A stretch of 64,000 nt of DNA, from contig NC_068995.1 in assembly GCF_001194135.2 (NCBI RefSeq), positions 38,033,426 through 38,097,425 on the forward strand, written 5' to 3'. Numbering within the stretch: the first letter of the stretch is position 1; each line of letters starts with the position of its first letter. A program made the translations under genes and the position numbers. Shown in pieces: positions 8,537 to 42,745 of this stretch. The notes under the pieces are model-generated. The model saw nothing but the letters and a program-made list of their open reading frames with translations. It did not search any database and was not told the DNA's origin. Origin of the DNA: Octopus bimaculoides. Taxonomy: Eukaryota.

Positions 8537-10278
8537 CTATAAGATAGATAGAAAGAGAGAGAGTGAGATTGAAAACTATAGATAGATAGAGATATGTACA
8601 CACGCGTCCACGCACACCGATACACTGAGATACATCGGTATAAAGTAGATACAGTCTCAGTTGCGGAGCATTCCCTTCAGCCATCAACTGGAAATCACAA
8701 TGATATGGGCATATGTTTCTTTCAACATGTTCTCCAAACACTCATAATAACAAGAAATGTCTGGATTTCGTAGGTGCACACTACAGCATGCGCTTCATCT
8801 CCGTTATCAATTCAGCAACGACACGAAACACTGTGTATCGTGAAAGGACACCAAACACATTAGAAGTTCAGTTTCTTTACCGAGACTTTAGGTTTATTCT
8901 TCATATATTTTGACATATTCATGACTGATAAAGCAATTTTTAGGTTCGTTCTCCAATTACTGATTCACTACAGCGTTGTTTCTGAAGTCTTTTACATGAA
9001 ACATAGAACATAGTGGTTGGAGATTAAAGAAATATCATCGCGTTATCATATGTATAGAAAGCACTCTAAAAGTATTTCTCCGCTGAACTTTGACAAGTAA
9101 GTCCACAAATTTATTTATATTCTATGTATTTATTCATTAGCCAAAGCTGGCCACATTAAAATCAATGCCGCTGCAATTTTTGTACGAACCACTGCATTTG
9201 ACAGACAAAAAATAGATGAATATTTAAAATATAGTCAGATCTACTACATTTTTCGTACATTTACACACCCTCTGCTTTAAAGTTTACAGTATATATATAT
9301 ATATNNNNNNNNNNNNNNNNNNNNNNNNNNNNNNNNNNNNNNNNNNNNNNNNNNNNNNNNNNNNNNNNNNNNNNNNNNNNNNNNNNNNNNNNNNNNNNNN
9401 NNNNNNNNNNNNNNNNNNNNNNNNNNNNNNNNNNNNNNNNNNNNNNNNNNNNNNNNNNNNNNNNNNNNNNNNNNNNNNNNNNNNNNNNNNNNNNNNNNNN
9501 NNNNNNNNNNNNNNNNNNNNNNNNNNNNNNNNNNNNNNNNNNNNNNNNNNNNNNNNNNNNNNNNNNNNNNNNNNNNNNNNNNNNNNNNNNNNNNNNNNNN
9601 NNNNNNNNNNNNNNNNNNNNNNNNNNNNNNNNNNNNNNNNNNNNNNNNNNNNNNNNNNNNNNNNNNNNNNNNNNNNNNNNNNNNNNNNNNNNNNNNNNNN
9701 NNNNNNNNNNNNNNNNNNNNNNNNNNNNNNNNNNNNNNNNNNNNNNNNNNNNNNNNNNNNNNNNNNNNNNNNNNNNNNNNNNNNNNNNNNNNNNNNNNNN
9801 NNNNNNNNNNNNNNNNNNNNNNNNNNNNNNNNNNNNNNNNNNNNNNNNNNNNNNNNNNNNNNNNNNNNNNNNNNNNNNNNNNNNNNNNNNNNNNNNNNNN
9901 NNNNNNNNNNNNNNNNNNNNNNNNNNNNNNNNNNNNNNNNNNNNNNNNNNNNNNNNNNNNNNNNNNNNNNNNNNNNNNNNNNNNNNNNNNNNNNNNNNNN
10001 NNNNNNNNNNNNNNNNNNNNNNNNNNNNNNNNNNNNNNNNNNNNNNNNNNNNNNNNNNNNNNNNNNNNNNNNNNNNNNNNNNNNNNNNNNNNNNATATAT
10101 TTATGAAGCAAGTAAACGTGTTGATGTGTTTGCTGCATAAATAATGAATGTAACGTGATCAAGATTTGATTGATAGATTTAGGTCTCAGATTGTAAAGGA
10201 TATTTTTGTTGAAGCAATGCAAAGTGACTTCTCAGGTATATTTTTCGTTCTTTAACAATATTGAATATAGAGATAATA

Positions 10279-11812: not shown

Positions 11813-12449
11813 NNNNNNNNNNNNNNNNNNNNNNNNNNNNNNNNNNNNNNNNNNNNNNNNNNNNNNNNNNNNNNNNNNNNNNNNNNNNNNNNNNNNNNNN
11901 NNNNNNNNNNNNNNNNNNNNNNNNNNNNNNNNNNNNNNNNNNNNNNNNNNNNNNNNNNNNNNNNNNNNNNNNNNNNNNNNNNNNNNNNNNNNNNNNNNNN
12001 NNNNNNNNNNNNNNNNNNNNNNNNNNNNNNNNNNNNNNNNNNNNNNNNNNNNNNNNNNNNNNNNNNNNNNNNNNNNNNNNNNNNNNNNNNNNNNNNNNNN
12101 NNNNNNNNNNNNNNNNNNNNNNNNNNNNNNNNNNNNNNNNNNNNNNNNNNNNNNNNNNNNNNNNNNNNNNNNNNNNNNNNNNNNNNNNNNNNNNNNNNNN
12201 NNNNNNNNNNNNNNNNNNNNNNNNNNNNNNNNNNNNNNNNNNNNNNNNNNNNNNNNNNNNNNNNNNNNNNNNNNNNNNNNNNNNNNNNNNNNNNNNNNNN
12301 NNNNNNNNNNNNNNNNNNNNNNNNNNNNNNNNNNNNNNNNNNNNNNNNNNNNNNNNNNNNNNNNNNNNNNNNNNNNNNNNNNNNNNNNNNNNNNNNNNNN
12401 NNNNNNNNNNNNNNNNNNNNNNNNNNNNNNNNNNNNNNNNNNNNNNNNN

Positions 12450-13520: not shown

Positions 13521-14243
13521 ANNNNNNNNNNNNNNNNNNNNNNNNNNNNNNNNNNNNNNNNNNNNNNNNNNNNNNNNNNNNTATATATATATATATATAT
13601 ATATGCATATCTGTGTTTATGTGTTCGTGTGGTAAGATCATTATTCCGTACTTTGTAAAGGTATCGTTGGATCCTTTACATTTTTCTTTAATTATTGCTA
13701 CGTTTATGTCAATGAGTGTAGTGGTTGGCAGATGGTCAACAGAAACATATTACATATGTGCTTTTCAAGCTTAATGCGTTTGTATGATTTGATACAATGA
13801 ATTATCGTTTTGTTTCAGATTGCTGATTCAACCCATGCATGACAATCTGCTGTTTTACATATCGTCAATGGAAATACAGAGTAAATTTTGTCACACGGAA
13901 CATATTTGCTAACATAATTTCCAGTTGAGATTAAATTTGCTAATATGGGAAGATAACTAATATACTTCACTAATTAATCTAATGAAATTTACAAAATGGA
14001 CGTACTGAAATGAGAAGACTTTTGCAAACTGGCAAATTCTGTTGACATCTGTAGTGTAAAAATTCACCGATAACACACAATAGCAAATTTATTAGATTTC
14101 ATACTTTAAAACGAAAATCAGAAAGGTTTAATCGCAGCATATTTTGATAATCATGTCTTTCATGTCGTTATGTGTAATGGAATTACTCCTCCATATTGCA
14201 GATGTTAGAAATATATCGTAATATTACCATTAATTTAATAACT

Positions 14244-14261
14244 GCTTTTCTTTCATTCAAG
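14244..14261 (+). promoter_or_regulatory. Probable 3' splice acceptor of a 5'-UTR intron of the CR gene
   Basis: gcttttctttcattcaAG (AG at 14260-14261), preceded by a ttaat branch-like motif, 75 nt upstream of the ATG. Confidence 0.55.
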
Positions 14262-14336
14262 ATAATTGAACAAATTGTAAAATTACCAGTAATCTATAAG
14301 ATGACAATGTTAAATCACACACGGAAACACTGAAAA

Positions 14337-15530
14337 ATGATGTCAAAACAATATTTTGTGATTCTGATACCGGTTATATCGATAGTAATTTCGTGCCCCA
14401 CGTACAAGGATGAAACATTATTACAAGCAACTTTATTATCTAATTATAACAAAGGTGTGAGGCCTGTTATTGATTTATCTACAACTATCAATATCGAAGC
14501 TGCTTTATTTCTTCACACATTCTATGGTCTGGACTTTGTAAATAATATAGTTACAGCTCGGTACGACTTTAGTCTAGAATGGACTGACGAACTTCTGACT
14601 TGGAATCCTCTAGACTACAACAACATTACAGTTATATACATAGAAAAAGATAAGCTGTGGACACCAGAAATCGTAATGTGCAATGCAATGAAGGAATCAG
14701 AAGAGAAAGGTAGCTTTCTTGAAGTAAAGGTTTTTAATAATGGACGTGTACAAATGCGGTCACTAAAACTGCTGAAATCCTATTGCACATTTGATGCTTA
14801 CGCCTATCCATTTGACCAGCATGACTGCGAAATATACATTTGCGTTGCTTTGCATGATCCTGTCCATACAAGAATAAGAACACTTACATATGATAATTTA
14901 AATTATTCCCCAAACTATAACTGGGACATCGACTACAATGGTATAAAAAATGCTTCCGACCAGAGATTCAGCGTCGTATTTGCTCCATTGCATTTACGAC
15001 GTAGACTCACAATAGCTATTGTAGCTATGCTGATTCCAACAATAATGATGACTATTTTGACTATATTTGTCTTCCTTCTACCTCCAGAATCAGGGGAAAA
15101 AGTTTCTCTAGCTACGACAATATTTTTATCAAACGTTTTGTATCTTGTTGAAATCGAGAAAACTACACCGAGGAATTCCAAATTTCCTCCACTTCTTATG
15201 ACATACTTGATGCTATTATCACTTTTAAGTGGTATCGCAACACTTGGGTCGGTGATTATATGCAAGTTGTATGTCATTCAGTCATCTGATGAAAAGACAT
15301 CGAACCTCCCAGATCAAACAACAAACAAATCTCGAAGCAACAAAATTGCGGATAGTTCAACAATTACCACGAGAGAGAACGATCCCGTAACTTTGAACTC
15401 AAAATCAAATACGAAAACTAAATTTTGTATAACCGAATATTTCCGACTTGATGAGACATTCCTGAAAATTAGCATTATAACAACAGTAATAATTTCAATA
15501 TTATTTACTTCTTTCTTGTGTACACAATAG
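14337..15530 (+). CDS. Cephalopod chemotactile receptor (CR)-type pentameric ligand-gated cation channel subunit; atypical nAChR-like, CRT1-like paralog; single coding exon, 397 aa
   Basis: Uninterrupted ORF with a signal peptide (MMSKQYFVILIPVISIVIS) and the pLGIC motifs NY..GVRPV, WTDELLTWNPLDYNNIT and LWTPE. Cys-loop C150-x13-C164 (CTFDAYAYPFDQHDC); M1 ending FLLPPESGEK, M2 VSLATTIFLSNVLYLV, M3 and a terminal M4. Loop-C vicinal CC, loop-B Trp and loop-A Tyr are absent. Exact paralog name cannot be assigned without a search. Confidence 0.95.
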   Translation: MMSKQYFVILIPVISIVISCPTYKDETLLQATLLSNYNKGVRPVIDLSTTINIEAALFLHTFYGLDFVNNIVTARYDFSLEWTDELLTWNPLDYNNITVIYIEKDKLWTPEIVMCNAMKESEEKGSFLEVKVFNNGRVQMRSLKLLKSYCTFDAYAYPFDQHDCEIYICVALHDPVHTRIRTLTYDNLNYSPNYNWDIDYNGIKNASDQRFSVVFAPLHLRRRLTIAIVAMLIPTIMMTILTIFVFLLPPESGEKVSLATTIFLSNVLYLVEIEKTTPRNSKFPPLLMTYLMLLSLLSGIATLGSVIICKLYVIQSSDEKTSNLPDQTTNKSRSNKIADSSTITTRENDPVTLNSKSNTKTKFCITEYFRLDETFLKISIITTVIISILFTSFLCTQ

Positions 15531-15583
15531 AAGAAAAACTAGATGAGCAAGACATCATAATAGTAGATTTAGAACGACGGGTG

Positions 15584-15589
15584 AATAAA
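15584..15589 (+). promoter_or_regulatory. Candidate polyadenylation signal of the CR gene
   Basis: AATAAA 53 nt after the stop codon; weak evidence in AT-rich DNA. Confidence 0.35.
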
Positions 15590-16439
15590 TATATAACATC
15601 TTGAAATTCATATTTCTAATATCATAAATTTGTGTAATTTTGAGCAGTTTTAGCAACATATGAGAAGCTACATCATATAAGTTCATAAAACTACCGGAAT
15701 GATTACCAGATGCTGACTGAAAATCTGAAAAAATTAATGCGAATACAGACTGAAATTCTTTGAAATTTATGAAATCGCGAATCAAACATATCTACTACTG
15801 GATTGTGAACATGGTTTCTTACAATTTTCATTCGTGTGTATTATACATAAAACATAACACACAGTTTACACAATTATTCATACTTCAACGTCTGTATGAT
15901 TATATTTATAATTTATGACACTAACACAGGATCTTACAGGCATATGTGTCTAGGCACTAAAACACGGTGATACAAATAGACGGAGCTACGACGACTAACT
16001 CAAATGTTTGTATTTACATACAGTCGAATACATTTCCTATTCGACTATTCTATATAACAGACCATTACAGAAATCTGTCAATTTCACCACATCTGCTGAT
16101 AAAAGGAAAATCATGGAACCATATAGTTCTCTCAGAATTTCACAACTACCTCTCTATATATCAGGTTTAATAATATGCGATACAAGTATAAATTTTGTGC
16201 GATTTCATTAACAAAAACTTCATCTCTGTCTTAATGGCATGTGCAAATGTTTATTATTTTTACTGTTGAGAGTTTCCATATAATAATATAGTCATTGCAG
16301 ATATACGATTTTTTCCTCACGTGGATGTGAGTTCGAGTCTCATGGCTGGCCGCAGTCAGATTTTTCTGCAAAATATGGATAGTTTATCCTGTTCGTGCTC
16401 TTATATTAGCTTTATTCTACGTTTGAGAATAATTTGTTT

Positions 16440-16483
<44 letters not shown>

Positions 16484-17289
16484 CGCCNNNNNNNNNNNNN
16501 NNNNNNNNNNNNNNNNNNNNNNNNNNNNNNNNNNNNNNNNNNNNNNNNNNNNNNNNNNNNNNNNNNNNNNNNNNNNNNNNNNNNNNNNNNNNNNNNNNNN
16601 NNNNNNNNNNNNNNNNNNNNNNNNNNNNNNNNNNNNNNNNNNNNNNNNNNNNNNNNNNNNNNNNNNNNNNNNNNNNNNNNNNNNNNNNNNNNNNNNNNNN
16701 NNNNNNNNNNNNNNNNNNNNNNNNNNNNNNNNNNNNNNNNNNNNNNNNNNNNNNNNNNNNNNNNNNNNNNNNNNNNNNNNNNNNNNNNNNNNNNNNNNNN
16801 NNNNNNNNNNNNNNNNNNNNNNNNNNNNNNNNNNNNNNNNNNNNNNNNNNNNNNNNNNNNNNNNNNNNNNNNNNNNNNNNNNNNNNNNNNNNNNNNNNNN
16901 NNNNNNNNNNNNNNNNNNNNNNNNNNNNNNNNNNNNNNNNNNNNNNNNNNNNNNNNNNNNNNNNNNNNNNNNNNNNNNNNNNNNNNNNNNNNNNNNNNNN
17001 NNNNNNNNNNNNNNNNNNNNNNNNNNNNNNNNNNNNNNNNNNNNNNNNNNNNNNNNNNNNNNNNNNNNNNNNNNNNNNNNNNNNNNNNNNNNNNNNNNNN
17101 NNNNNNNNNNNNNNNNNNNNNNNTCCCCACCTCCCACCTCCCAACACCCTCACATCACACCACGCTACACCATATCCCACAACACATCACTTCACAACAC
17201 ACCACCACGCACACACCAGCACTGACCAACTCCCTTCCCCACCTTCACACCTACATACACACATAAATACGTTAAGATCACCAGCATTC

Positions 17290-17630: not shown

Positions 17631-18408
17631 ATATATATATANNNNNNNNNNNNNNNNNNNNNNNNNNNNNNNNNNNNNNNNNNNNNNNNNNNNNNNNNNN
17701 NNNNNNNNNNNNNNNNNNNNNNNNNNNNNNNNNNNNNNNNNNNNNNNNNNNNNNNNNNNNNNNNNNNNNNNNNNNNNNNNNNNNNNNNNNNNNNNNNNNN
17801 NNNNNNNNNNNNNNNNNNNNNNNNNNNNNNNNNNNNNNNNNNNNNNNNNNNNNNNNNNNNNNNNNNNNNNNNNNNNNNNNNNNNNNNNNNNNNNNNNNNN
17901 NNNNNNNNNNNNNNNNNNNNNNNNNNNNNNNNNNNNNNNNNNNNNNNNNNNNNNNNNNNNNNNNNNNNNNNNNNNNNNNNNNNNNNNNNNNNNNNNNNNN
18001 NNNNNNNNNNNNNNNNNNNNNNNNNNNNNNNNNNNNNNNNNNNNNNNNNNNNNNNNNNNNNNNNNNNNNNNNNNNNNNNNNNNNNNNNNNNNNNNNNNNN
18101 NNNNNNNNNNNNNNNNNNNNNNNNNNNNNNNNNNNNNNNNNNNNNNNNNNNNNNNNNNNNNNNNNNNNNNNNNNNNNNNNNNNNNNNNNNNNNNNNNNNN
18201 NNNNNNNNNNNNNNNNNNNNNNNNNNNNNNNNNNNNNNNNNNNNNNNNNNNNNNNNNNNNNNNNNNNNNNNNNNNNNNNNNNNNNNNNNNNNNNNNNNNN
18301 NNNNNNNNNNNNNNNNNNNNNNNNNNNNNNNNNNNNNNNNNNNNNNNNNNNNNNNNNNNNNNNNNNNNNNNNNNNNNNNNNNNNNNNNNNNNNNNNNNNN
18401 NNNNNNNN

Positions 18409-37771: not shown

Positions 37772-40700
37772 ATCTGTATTTGTGTGTGTGTGTGCGTGTA
37801 TGAGAATATGTTTACGAATGTATGCATATTTAGTTGTAAGTTGTAATCTTATTTGCTCGAGCAATATCCCAGGCTCATTTACAAATTTCTGTATACTATA
37901 AAACATAGTATAAACATACAAATACGTGTACATACGCACTAGACGTTTCTTCACACGCGCGCACACATTTCTAAAGGAAATTAGACGTAGTCTATCTGAA
38001 TACATAACAAACTAAATCAACGAGAAACGTTCTCTTTATCACTTATCTATCAATAGAATATTTGCTGTTTCGACGTGTCAAGATATTACCAAACACGTAT
38101 ACTTGGAACGTTGACGATCATAGATACTGTTGTTACTTCCTATTGCTAAGAAGATAAGTCTATTTTAATGCTTTCTTCGTTGTATTAATCGTTAATAAAC
38201 GCTGATGTGAGTGATTTCTGTCTTTGTTCCGTGTATTATATAACTTGTAACAACGTTTTTCCATTTAGATATGGACGCAGACCGTTCTACTATCAGTTCC
38301 ACTGTCACCACACTTTTTTTCGCTCTCCTTTTTGTTTTTTTCACTAGACCTATGCTGTCATTTCTCTTTTTCTCGATTTTCCTCGACTCATTTTTCTTCC
38401 TGAAATGTCAAAATATTTTCGAAAAATATGTAAATTTAAACCCAAGATCGTCATAAGAGGAAGCACATTATATCCCTTTCTTTTTTAATTTTAGCTAAAT
38501 TGAAACAAATCATATATAAATACAAACAAATCTGCAAATGCCCCATTAACTTCACGAATATATAATTGTGTATAATGATAAAAATATGATTAATTATACA
38601 AATAATGAAATGAGGCGGAAGTAATTGTAAAAATGGTCTATCATTTATGTTCTTCTGCTATATTCTTAATAGTAAACATGTTCCAGATAAATATGAAAAG
38701 GTTAAGTCGAATTAGGAATTTGATAATGCCTTGTACGATTTGAAGTGACAATGTTTAAATGCAAAAAATGATTACAAAACGATGAGCTAACCCGAGTCAG
38801 AATCTAACCGAAAATTGAACGCTAACACTGCTCTTTGCGCATCCCACTGAGCCAAAAGCTCACCAATCTTCACGGTGGTGCACCAGCATGACCGCAGCCA
38901 CTTGGCTGAAACACATAAATAAAAAAAAAAAATCAATTTCAGTCAAATATCCTTAATATATACTTAAACTGTCTAATACTACATATGCTATTTATAAACA
39001 AACGCGAAAGGCTTTGTAAGTAATGGAGACACAGCTACTTTGGAAGACTTGGAGTGTAATAAGAACTGAATAAAATTATCAAATTATATCACAATAATAT
39101 TTTATTCTTCGATTTGAAGCAACAATTGTTAAATACAAACAAATGAAGGGAAAATGATTAGCTAACACCATCCAGAATCAAACACACAAATCAACGCTGA
39201 CACACACATACATATACACATAACACATATACACATATACACACCCACACACATTTGTATATATAAAGAGAGAGAGAGGGAAACAGAAATAGAGAAATAA
39301 ATAGAGCGAGATAAATAGATAGATATAAATATATATTTTATCATCACTAATTGTGACTGAGTGCATTGAAGCACCTATATTACAAGAAATAAGAGGTAAA
39401 CACTCTTAATACTCTAAGAAACACGCAACATATATACACTGACCAAACACTTGGGCAAGTATATGCTTCATATCATTATCGACGAATATAGACGCAACTT
39501 CAAAGAAGCCCTTCACCCCCCACACACATGGTCAATTAAGAAAACAAACAAAAGTGAGGACGTAACACACTCAGAGACAGAAATGAATTGTTGCTTTACG
39601 TTTCGAACTTAGCTCTTCTTCGAAAACAGGAAAACAAGTAAGTCCACAGGGGAAGAGGAAAAAAGGAAGAAAAAGGTGCCAAAAGTCCAGGTGAGGTTGC
39701 ATTTCAGAAGTGATCGGAAGTAGAAGGAATGCAGGGTAAGTGTTTTCTCGAGCAGGGTAAGTGTTTTCTCGGTATGTGTGTCTGACAGTAACTGCGTGTG
39801 TGCGTGCGACGTAGCGTGTGTGCGTGTGGTGGTAACTATATGTTTGCCATGGTGGTATGTGTCGTCGTGTGGTATTAAATGTGTGTGTGTGTGTGTGTGT
39901 GTGTGTTTGTATTTGTGTGAGTAGTGTGTGTGTGTTTGTCTGGGTAAGGTGTAGGATCTGTGTGTGTATGTGTTAATGTCGCTCTCAGAGGTCAGCAGCT
40001 ATAGTAACAGGAGTGAGAATGGGTGGGTGCGGTTGTGTGTGTGTGTCTGTTTGCATCTGTACATATGTGGAGGGGTCAATAGTGATACAGACGCAGTTTG
40101 AAGCAGTCTCAAAGGTGTGTGAAGGGTTGGGTGTGACTACGTGTGTGCGTGTGGGAATGTGTGTCTATCTATGTGTATGTGAGTGTGTGTGGAAGTGTAT
40201 AGACGTGCTTGTAAATGTGTGCATGTGTATGCGTTGTGTGTATGTTGTTCGTGTGGAGGGGTGTGTGTGAGGGAGAGAGGGTGAGGTGAAAGTGTGTGTG
40301 GGTGCGATGGTCTAGCCAACGGTGTGGGTATTATGTGTGCGGGCATGCGTTTGTGTGTGTGTGTGTGTGCGTGTGTGTGTGGCTATGTGTGTGCGCGGTG
40401 GTGTGTGCATGTGTGCGCGTGTGTGGTGTGTGTACACGCGTGTGCATGTGAAGTGTGTGTNNNNNNNNNNNNNNNNNNNNNNNNNNNNNNNNNNNNNNNN
40501 NNNNNNNNNNNNNNNNNNNNNNNNNNNNNNNNNNNNNNNNNNNNNNNNNNNNNNNNNNNNNNNNNNNNNNNNNNNNNNNNNNNNNNNCATGTGTGCGCGT
40601 GTGTGGTGTGTGTACACGCGTGTGCATGTGAAGTGTGTGTACGTGTGTGTGTATAAGGTGTATGTATGTGTTAGCTCGTGGGTGTGTATGTGGTGTGTTG

Positions 40701-40984
40701 TATAGAAATATAAAATAAAAATTAATACAAGTAAATAATGAAAATTAAAACCTAGTAATAATAAGAAAATAAATGAAAAGGATTTTGTGAATAAATCAGT
40801 AACAGAAATAAAATAATACAAAAATTAGTAGCAAAAATAAGATCAGTAACAGAATACATAAAAAATAGAAATTATGAAAAAAAGTAAAATAAAATAAATA
40901 CTGGAATAAAGAAATAAACGAATATAAAATATGTTTGAGAAACATGTTTTTTTAGAAGGGGTGTGGGGAAAAATCACCGAGAAG

Positions 40985-41845
40985 TTGGTGTGCCGAAAGG
41001 AGTTTGAGTACGTGCAGTGAAGATTTAAAGCTGTTCCAGGCGGAGTCTAGAGTTGACGGATCCATGGTGAAGGGCAATGCCAAAGACGGTGATGTCTTAG
41101 GTGGAGTTGTTGGCTAAGCGAAAATGACGGGCAACGCGGGTATTCTTACGTAGACGAACGTCTGTTATGTGTTCGGTGAACCGGTTGGTTAGCCGACGTC
41201 CGTTCTGACCAACGTAAAGTTTATTGCAAAGATTTCACCCGATACAATAAATGAGTCTTGAAGAAGTGCAGACGAAGGAGTTCCTTATATTGAGGGTACG
41301 CTGGTTAGATCTAGTGGGGAAAGTAGTGTTGATGATGAAAGGACAGGTGCTGGAACAGGGTCTGGAATAAGGGAAGGGTCCGGGTGAGGTTCGAATGGAG
41401 TGGGGTGGTAGCTACAGACCAGTAGGTCACATGGGTTACTGGTACGTTTGAAGGAAGGCAAGCGTGGGTTAGTGAAAATAGTGGTTACTGGGATCTAGAT
41501 GGAGGCGACGGAAGGCCCTCAAGATATTCCAACGAATGGATGGAGAGATGAAAGAGGGGAAAGGGATCGGTTTGGGGAAGGGAGGAGTGGGTAGTGTGAT
41601 CTATTGGACGAGTGCATTTCGGACAAGGATGGAGGGTATTCATGAAACATGAATAAGAGGGCCAGGTATTGGGACTGGGTATTGAAATCCTGGTCCCAGT
41701 TGCACAGGCGTCGGAGGCGGAGAAACTGGGGAAACTAGGAGAAAGCCCATTTGGTGTGTGAGGGATGAGAGCAGGAAACGTTAAAGCAGAGGTGCGTGTC
41801 TGAGGTTTAAAAGAAGGTGAAGTTAGTGAGGGACTGGATGTGGGG
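40985..41845 (-). mobile_element. Penelope-like element (second subfamily), RT C-terminus plus GIY-YIG pseudogene
   Basis: SHPSHTKWAFS*FPQFLRLRRLC; CTSSRLIYCIG*NLCNKLYVGQNGRRLTNRFTEH (IY..YVG GIY-YIG motif). Confidence 0.85.
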
Positions 41846-41851
41846 ATCAAA

Positions 41852-41907
<56 letters not shown>

Positions 41908-42109
41908 TTCAAAGTAAACTCTGTAATCGCTACCAATATAGCATAAGATTTCACCTCAAAAAATCTTTAATTAGATTCATTAAGGATAAACTTCGGTGTT
42001 GATTCTCATGTTTAGTATCACTGAAATCATGACGAAAACATTTTTTAAACAGACATCAATATTGGGGATTCTTTCTTTTCTTATTGTCTTCTTTCTTATT
42101 TTTTATTTT

Positions 42110-42745
42110 CCAGATGGCTGCGTGACTGATCAAAAGCGAGCTTAGATAGCAGCATGCAATGAAGTGTAGAATTCCATTGTTATGGTTCAGAGATGGTGGC
42201 GAGCTTGGAAAGGTCAGCATGCAACACTACTTCAATAAAAAGTTGTCATGCAAAGCTGATGACAAGGCCTTCTGTGAACGATGCAAGAAGGGATCGTCCA
42301 ACGACATCCCGATCAGCGGAGAACGTGGCAAAAGTGAAGGAAATGTTTAATCGCAGCCTGGAAGAATCAACACGTCAAGCAGCTCGTAAATGTGGACGAA
42401 GAAGAGACACAGCACATACAGTGTTACATAAAGAATTGAATTTTCGTCCGTGGAAACCTCATGGAGAGCAGGATCTAAAACCGAAAGGCAGTGACTGCAG
42501 AATTGAATTTGGAATGGCCTCCAATATGTCGAGATCTCACGTCCTTGAGATTTTTACCTATGGGGTTATGCGAAAGTGGAGGGGCACAACACAAAACCTC
42601 GCACACTGCTGGACTTGGAAACACGGATTCAAGAGGTTCTCCGTGATATCAAGGATGATGTGCTTCAGAAGGTTGTTCATTCTATTCCTGGCCGTTTGAA
42701 GAAACTAGTTGACCCCACCAGTGCTTCCATTCAAATATGAAGATT
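42110..42745 (+). mobile_element. Tc1/mariner-superfamily element (rosa/maT-like), internally deleted
   Basis: RPTTSRSAENVAKVKEMFNRS..STRQAARK..LHKELNFRPWKPH joined almost directly to DFYLWGYAK..KPRTLLDLETRIQEV; most of the catalytic core is missing. Confidence 0.75.

Follow-up and report, generated by a model that had tools for sequence, protein, structure and literature searches.

A paralog of the octopus chemotactile receptor CRT1 with charged residues at ligand-contact positions of its pocket

Chemotactile receptors and the nearest described channels

Canonical nicotinic acetylcholine receptors (nAChRs) bind acetylcholine (ACh) in an aromatic box, to which the α subunits add a vicinal Cys pair in loop C. 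The cephalopod chemotactile receptors (CRs) are becoming a textbook example of such a neurotransmitter receptor turned environmental sensor, with ligands known for a handful of the 26 octopus members. They were described from octopus in 2020, and structures followed in 2023 (van Giesen 2020; Allard 2023; Kang 2023, cited in PMC11526382). Up to 26 CRs are encoded by Octopus bimaculoides (bioRxiv 10.1101/2025.03.03.641191; PMC11526382). Cloning began with CRT1 and CR840, and a later lipid screen covered five CRs (bioRxiv 10.1101/2025.03.03.641191; PMC11526382; bioRxiv 10.1101/2025.10.28.685082); gating tests have been reported for a few others besides CRT1 and CR840 (bioRxiv 10.1101/2025.03.03.641191; 10.1101/2025.10.28.685082). 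Comparable histories are those of the insect and other protostome IRs, derived from iGluRs, and of the vertebrate TAARs, derived from amine receptors, both being tandem-expanded peripheral chemoreceptors that originated from neurotransmitter receptors (PMC11526382). The likeness of IRs and TAARs to CRs is conceptual only, however, as the protein folds are unrelated.

The gene studied here was found in a 64-kb stretch of O. bimaculoides DNA (the window; the gene and its product will be named hereafter the window gene and the window protein). We read it, with a probability of roughly 0.88, as encoding a CR subunit, that is, an nAChR-derived cation channel that does not bind ACh, that belongs to an orthogroup distinct from that of CRT1 and that is tuned to other ligands than CRT1. 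The CR family has already been published and enumerated in the O. bimaculoides genome, and the window gene represents no new type of system.

The closest described protein is CRT1 (formerly CR518; PDB 8EIS, 9E6B-D, 9YI4), which comes from the same species and family and is 60% identical over residues 8-394. Common to both are the M2 sequence from P249 to V271, a vestibule Glu (E104 in CRT1, E123 in the window protein), the loss of the ACh box, a cysteine pair of the C115/C169 type and a C-V-A-L motif in loop B. The two proteins differ in that they belong to separate orthogroups, that the pocket of the window protein carries seven changes (Y58D, W122R, F124L, S169L, L191R, Y39F and L37A, in CRT1 numbering), and that the outer M2 ring is Q17′/D19′ in CRT1 but E17′/E19′ in the window protein. 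Squid CRB1 (Doryteuthis; PDB 8EIZ) is likewise a member of the CR clade without vicinal Cys residues or a loop B Trp and with an SGEK pore, but it is distant (E 1.6e-37), has Tyr/Tyr at the C115/C169 sites and retains Y58 and W122. Canonical nAChRs (human α4β2, 5KXI, and α7) share with the window protein the pentameric Cys-loop architecture, the inter-subunit orthosteric site, the Leu gate at 9′ and the Glu at -1′, which is the classical determinant of cation selectivity in pLGICs. In contrast to them, the window protein, which is 20-27% identical to nAChRs, lacks the ACh aromatics and the C-loop disulfide and has about 5 residues fewer in loop C and a very short M3-M4 loop; moreover, its coding sequence has no intron, unlike the multi-exon nAChR genes.

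A complete single-exon gene and its family

The window gene consists of a complete single-exon coding sequence on the plus strand (14337..15530), identified as that of a CR subunit and CRT1 paralog from the list of ORFs, Pfam and the match to CRT1. The reading frame is uninterrupted from ATG to TAG (397 codons plus the stop, giving 397 aa), and no other ORF in the 64-kb window reaches 200 aa without crossing an N gap. The start codon has an A at position -3. Just 5′ of the ATG, an in-frame TGA stop can be read from the sequence (14331..14333, plus strand); therefore, the frame has no 5′ extension inside the exon, which encodes the entire N-terminus, signal peptide included. Between residues 8 and 394 the window protein aligns colinearly with the solved CRT1 chain, interrupted by one 1-residue gap in the disordered loop, so that the gene contains no coding intron, as the earlier note on this DNA had claimed. 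A pattern search revealed a candidate polyadenylation signal AATAAA on the plus strand (15584..15589), 54 nt past the stop and the sole AATAAA or ATTAAA within 15531-16200.

The protein starts with a signal peptide (residues 1-20, MMSKQYFVILIPVISIVISC; 14337..14396, plus strand, as are all features below) marked by a hydropathy peak at residues 2-20; its putative cleavage site agrees with the solved CRT1 chain 8eis, whose mature N-terminus aligns with residue 20/21. It is followed by the extracellular ligand-binding domain (residues 21-222; 14397..15002), delimited by Pfam (Neur_chan_LBD, residues 28-200, E 2.5e-31), by the beta-sandwich of the AF2 model and by residue mapping from CRT1. Alignment places within it the Cys-loop C150-x13-C164 with its YPFD motif (14784..14828). 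In an alignment of 34 sequences including the window protein, C150, P158, D160 and C164 are invariant, and all invariant pLGIC residues are present in the window protein. Helices M1 (226-247), M2, the pore helix (253-276), and M3 (286-322) occupy 15012..15302, as seen from the AF2 helices and from Pfam (Neur_chan_memb, residues 231-343, E 8.6e-14). A short disordered intracellular M3-M4 loop (residues ~323-360; 15303..15416; pLDDT <50 for 323-365) leads to the MA/M4 helix (residues 361-396; 15417..15524), which is an AF2 helix with a hydropathy peak at 378-396. When the AF2 model (mean pLDDT 78.4) was submitted to Foldseek, the best match was 8eis_A (E 7.4e-43, TM 0.95, RMSD 1.6 Å, 62% identity), nAChRs being found at E ~5e-27. 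These pLGIC features are far beyond chance, and each part of the complete subunit described in the earlier note (signal peptide, Cys-loop, four TM helices and the GEK motif) was recovered by Pfam, hydropathy, alignment or AF2.

The pore begins with PPESGEK at residues 249-255, in which G253-E254-K255 is of the cation type. Glu254 lies at -1′, Leu264 at 9′ and Glu272/Glu274 at 17′/19′, and from P249 to V271 the M2 sequence is exactly that of CRT1. In the vestibule, E123 corresponds by alignment to CRT1 E104, a residue that tunes high Ca2+ permeation (bioRxiv 10.1101/2025.03.03.641191). Because Glu254, Leu264 and E123 are kept, the window protein is probably a cation-selective channel that is permeable to Ca2+.

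An identical call of the window gene is present in O. bimaculoides assembly GCA_001194135.2, at 38,047,762-38,048,955 of the chromosome record CM046615.1 (58.16 Mb). It belongs to a set of eight CR-type genes that are all on the same strand within 240 kb of CM046615.1 (37.81-38.05 Mb), the other seven starting at 37,808,365, 37,831,647, 37,850,625, 37,889,003, 37,933,499, 37,956,802 and 37,983,027; the window gene is thus the eighth and most distal CR mapped in the cluster. Six of the seven other genes are plain single-exon models (seven of eight when the window gene is counted), and in the remaining one (P0012) the entire CR-homologous part forms one block. The window gene arose through tandem duplication inside this cluster. 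A tblastn search with the window protein detected no second copy or fragment in the window, including the 48 kb downstream of the gene. The window itself is draft sequence, rich in AT and interrupted by 15 N gaps that have microsatellites at their flanks. A tRNA scan of the window found none, and an ORF at 42163-42696 that looked transposase-like by eye gave no Pfam or PDB match.

The family assignment was examined by sequence searches and by a tree. CRT1 came out on top of a search of PDB sequences (9e6b, E 2.5e-148; 8eis, E 4.4e-146), with squid CRB1 and human nAChR α4 (E 2.8e-33) far below. In a large protein database, about 30 octopus and other cephalopod relatives matched at E <1e-75, followed by a gap down to molluscan nAChR-like proteins at ~1e-32, and an exhaustive representative search showed the same score gap between the cephalopod relatives and nAChR-like proteins. 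The neighbour-joining (NJ) tree was built from 153 sequences and 365 trimmed columns using Kimura distances, with the p-distance capped, and 200 bootstraps; it is distance-based and not ML, and its sampling includes some 10 of the 26 CRs of O. bimaculoides and few verified nAChRs from cephalopods. The window gene grouped with its O. vulgaris ortholog and an ortholog from Logan (P0002) in 200/200 replicates, within a clade of 25 octopus sequences that includes CRT1 (200/200) and a wider clade of 41 sequences that adds squid CRB1 (176/200). Outside the CR clades fell human α4, every gastropod 'nAChR' protein and the seven sequences having the full Tyr/Trp/Cys-Cys signature. CRT1 clustered with orthologs of its own (P0004 and P0006, 200/200), and therefore the window gene is a paralog and not an ortholog of CRT1; in keeping with a separate orthogroup, F192 is the only one of the CRT1 residues Y58, W122, F124, S169 and F192 that the window protein retains. 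Sequence comparisons thus support its membership in the cephalopod CR family. The earlier note had proposed just such an nAChR-derived CR, as opposed to a protein grouping with canonical nAChR subunits, and its proposal is borne out by the best match to CRT1, the octopus CR clade, the loss of the ACh site and the cluster position.

A ligand pocket with three charged residues

The published CRT1 numbering was checked prior to mapping (6/6 residues match, with a mature offset of 20). By alignment, CRT1 L37 corresponds to A56 of the window protein, Y39 to F58, Y58 to D77, W122 to R141 and F124 to L143. The loop B segment C150-V151-A152-L153 is unchanged as C169-V170-A171-L172, whereas E167-D168-S169 is replaced by D186-N187-L188 and E190-L191-F192 by Q209-R210-F211. 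That is, the window pocket keeps hydrophobic residues (F58, L143, L172, L188 and F211) and has charged ones, D77, R141 and R210, at CRT1 contact positions.

In CRT1, residues Y58, W122, F124 and F192 contact every ligand, pocket mutations abolish activation by microbial ligands, and Y58V and F124V impair the responses to norharmane and progesterone (bioRxiv 10.1101/2025.03.03.641191; 10.1101/2025.10.28.685082). Since most CRT1 contact positions are changed, the window paralog would not be expected to share the agonists of CRT1; judging from its pocket, it would give no response to norharmane, H3C, lumichrome or progesterone and would be tuned elsewhere. A conserved paralog with a pocket chemistry this far from that of CRT1 makes a sensible candidate for deorphanisation.

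The two substitutions at CRT1 positions 58 and 122 are unusual within the family. Across all 22 other octopus CRs sampled, position 58 is occupied by Y, W, L, V, F, M or I and position 122 by W, Y, V, S, T, L or A, neither being ever charged. Among the 25 octopus CRs sampled, which represent some 10 of the 26 genes of O. bimaculoides, D77 and R141 were each found in the orthogroup of the window gene alone; a profile search for additional CRs returned essentially the same set, so that this uniqueness refers to 25 octopus sequences. Moreover, D77, R141 and R210 are kept in all three orthologs. The charged triad may be the one point of this locus that is new. Given three charged residues in the pocket, the hydrophobic-pocket paradigm of CRs, as far as it concerns poorly soluble ligands, may not carry over to the window protein. 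As a tentative suggestion, the triad could make the protein either a sensor of polar or charged (e.g. anionic or zwitterionic) surface molecules or an accessory subunit that is salt-bridged and independent of ligand. If true, either possibility would broaden octopus taste-by-touch, in the chemical space that it covers or in the logic by which its receptors assemble.

If homology with CRT1 is a guide, channels would form from five subunits, as homomers or together with other CRs, and a small molecule on a touched surface would bind in the extracellular-domain pocket between subunits. Binding would open the M2 pore and thereby depolarise the sucker sensory cells in which the window gene is predicted to be expressed. 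The window protein might instead act solely as an accessory or modulatory CR subunit in heteropentamers, in the manner of nAChR β or α5 subunits, with the D77-R141 pair filling or closing the pocket. In that case its own pocket would be no agonist site, and the subunit would alter the pharmacology or conductance of its CR partners. CR subunits do form many multimeric complexes (bioRxiv 10.1101/2025.03.03.641191), the two aromatics replaced by D77 and R141 are ones that touch every CRT1 ligand, the replacing residues are opposite in charge and both located on the complementary face, and the pore and TM domain are the most conserved parts of the gene. However, the extracellular domain is also under purifying selection (ω 0.30-0.55), a pocket triad kept in three species fits specific binding equally well, and both CRT1 and CR840 function as homomers (bioRxiv 10.1101/2025.03.03.641191), so that a purely accessory role appears unlikely.

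Conservation of the gene and loss of the acetylcholine site

A positional ortholog exists in O. vulgaris (OX597828.1), where the locus is colinear over more than 12 kb and the frame is an uninterrupted 397 codons encoding a protein 84.6% identical to the window protein; the corresponding NCBI model (P0003, 329 aa) is cut short and ends in a foreign C-terminus. A third octopus carries a 397-codon ortholog that is 78.8% identical, with an identical CDS in five Logan runs. Neither ortholog shows any indel or stop. The five equal-length 3.5-kb Logan contigs carrying this 79% ortholog (runs SRR11869384-94) were considered as possible transcripts and rejected; they are genomic, because they stay colinear with the genome into the flanks on either side and terminate in microsatellites.

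Substitution rates (ω, Nei-Gojobori) were computed per region for the window gene against the two orthologs. For the whole gene, ω was 0.63 against O. vulgaris and 0.30 against the third species. The lowest values were those of TM1-3 (0.26 and 0.10, respectively), followed by the extracellular domain (0.55 and 0.30), whereas the intracellular loop with M4 had the highest in the gene (1.41 and 0.63). As judged from these values, selection acts on the window gene, and its ligand-binding domain evolves fast, as is the case in CRs generally (PMC11526382; bioRxiv 10.1101/2025.03.03.641191).

The constraint is weak for the O. bimaculoides-O. vulgaris pair (ω 0.63; nonsynonymous deficit, p = 0.035), in which the CDS is no better conserved (91.9%) than the 5′ flank (91.6%). 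Together with surroundings that are repeat-rich and gap-rich and contain transposon remnants, this is what would be seen if the window gene were a silent or degenerating duplicate, on its way to becoming a pseudogene within a tandem array of fast turnover. Such decay is nevertheless highly improbable, as the 397-codon ORF is intact without indel in three species, a frame accumulating substitutions at random up to the observed divergence would remain open with a probability of 0.026 (O. vulgaris) or 0.003 (third species), and the nonsynonymous deficit against the third species is pronounced (p = 1e-10 and 1e-7). Furthermore, ω is only 0.10-0.26 over TM1-3, and every invariant pLGIC residue is present.

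The ACh site was inspected in HMMER and MAFFT alignments to human α4, using the positions of the nAChR aromatic box. In the window protein, C115 stands in place of the loop A Tyr, A171 in place of the loop B Trp and D77 in place of the loop D Trp, and the shortened loop C is devoid of both Tyr residues and of the vicinal Cys pair. In the CR clade as a whole, the loop C Cys-Cys pair occurs in 0 of the 41 proteins. With all canonical ACh-binding residues gone, the window protein would not bind ACh in the canonical manner. A conventional ACh-gated nicotinic subunit, as the Pfam domains, the overall fold shared with nAChR/5-HT3 receptors and the automatic NCBI names of paralogs ('acr-2-like', 'alpha-like 2', '5-HT3A-like') might suggest, is effectively refuted by the missing loop A Tyr, loop B/D Trp, loop C Tyr and vicinal Cys residues, by a tree position outside the group with human α4 and all proteins having the Tyr, Trp and Cys-Cys signature, and by an identity of 60% to CRT1 against 20-27% to nAChRs.

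The residual interest of the locus lies in the conserved charged pocket triad and in the CR-specific cysteine pair 115/169. For annotators, this co-varying pair is a useful marker, and genes of this kind should be labelled chemotactile and not acetylcholine or serotonin receptors.

Within the 41-member clade, both positions 115 and 169 are Cys in 34 proteins and neither is in the other 7, a single Cys never being seen. In the third-species ortholog of the window gene, C115 and C169 have been lost together.

A co-varying cysteine pair in chemotactile receptors

In the chemotactile receptor (CR) protein encoded by the window, Cys115 (codon at 14679-14681, + strand) occupies the position of the loop A Tyr of nicotinic acetylcholine receptors in the family alignment, and Cys169 (14841-14843, + strand) lies two residues ahead of the loop B Trp position. 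Across the CR-clade alignment these two positions co-vary perfectly: both are Cys in 34 of the 41 proteins and neither is in the other 7, a single Cys never being found (0/41). In the ortholog from a third octopus neither cysteine survives, the two having gone as a pair (C to G, C to T). Such a pattern marks a putative CR-specific disulfide, which may already have been described in the structure paper of CRT1, the solved octopus CR.

The third ortholog (79%) comes from identical 3.5-kb genomic contigs in five sequencing runs of one octopus species (L006-L010; Logan SRR11869384, -85, -90, -91 and -94). Since its dS is ~0.36 to O. bimaculoides and likewise to O. vulgaris, this species is an outgroup to that pair.

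Flank conservation and public gene models

When window 13649-15604 was aligned with positions 5011-7052 of L005, the O. vulgaris locus carrying the ortholog, the 470 nt preceding the ATG proved as well conserved (91.6%) as the coding sequence (91.9%), and the 3′ flank diverged quickly beyond ~75 nt. A conserved promoter or 5′ UTR may account for the similarity of the 5′ flank, as may low overall divergence alone.

CR genes are frequently mis-modelled in public annotations. For the O. vulgaris ortholog, the annotated model (P0003) is multi-exon, covers 10 kb and encodes 329 aa; it lacks the first 73 residues and ends in a foreign C-terminus, despite the presence of an intact 397-codon single exon at 5785-6978 of L005 (OX597828.1). 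P0012 (locus L002), the model of another CR gene of the same O. bimaculoides cluster, has an N-terminal extension of ~75 aa contributed by upstream exons; by eye, this extension looks transposase-like. CR identity is moreover hidden behind automatic names such as "acr-2-like", "alpha-like 2", "5-HT3A-like" and "unc-29-like".

Gaps, simple repeats and a transposon remnant

The window contains 15 N runs (assembly gaps) totaling 5,062 N, for example at 1065-1532, 9305-10094, 11813-12449, 16488-17123 and 17642-18408, nearly all flanked by (TA)n, (ATAC)n, (TG)n or (CT)n microsatellites. These gaps and repeats also give rise to many of the window's long "ORFs", artefacts whose frames run across N stretches or microsatellite sequence. 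At 40001-42000, next to an N gap (40461-40587), the GC skew is locally strong (+0.50) and the sequence includes CA/TG-rich low-complexity stretches; this is probably a strand-biased simple repeat, and no gene was found in this interval. An ORF fragment on the - strand (24722-25060), lying past the 3′ end of the CR gene by about 9 kb, matches the HTH domain of Mos1/mariner transposases (Pfam HTH_48, E 2.4e-09) and is a decayed mariner-type transposon remnant.
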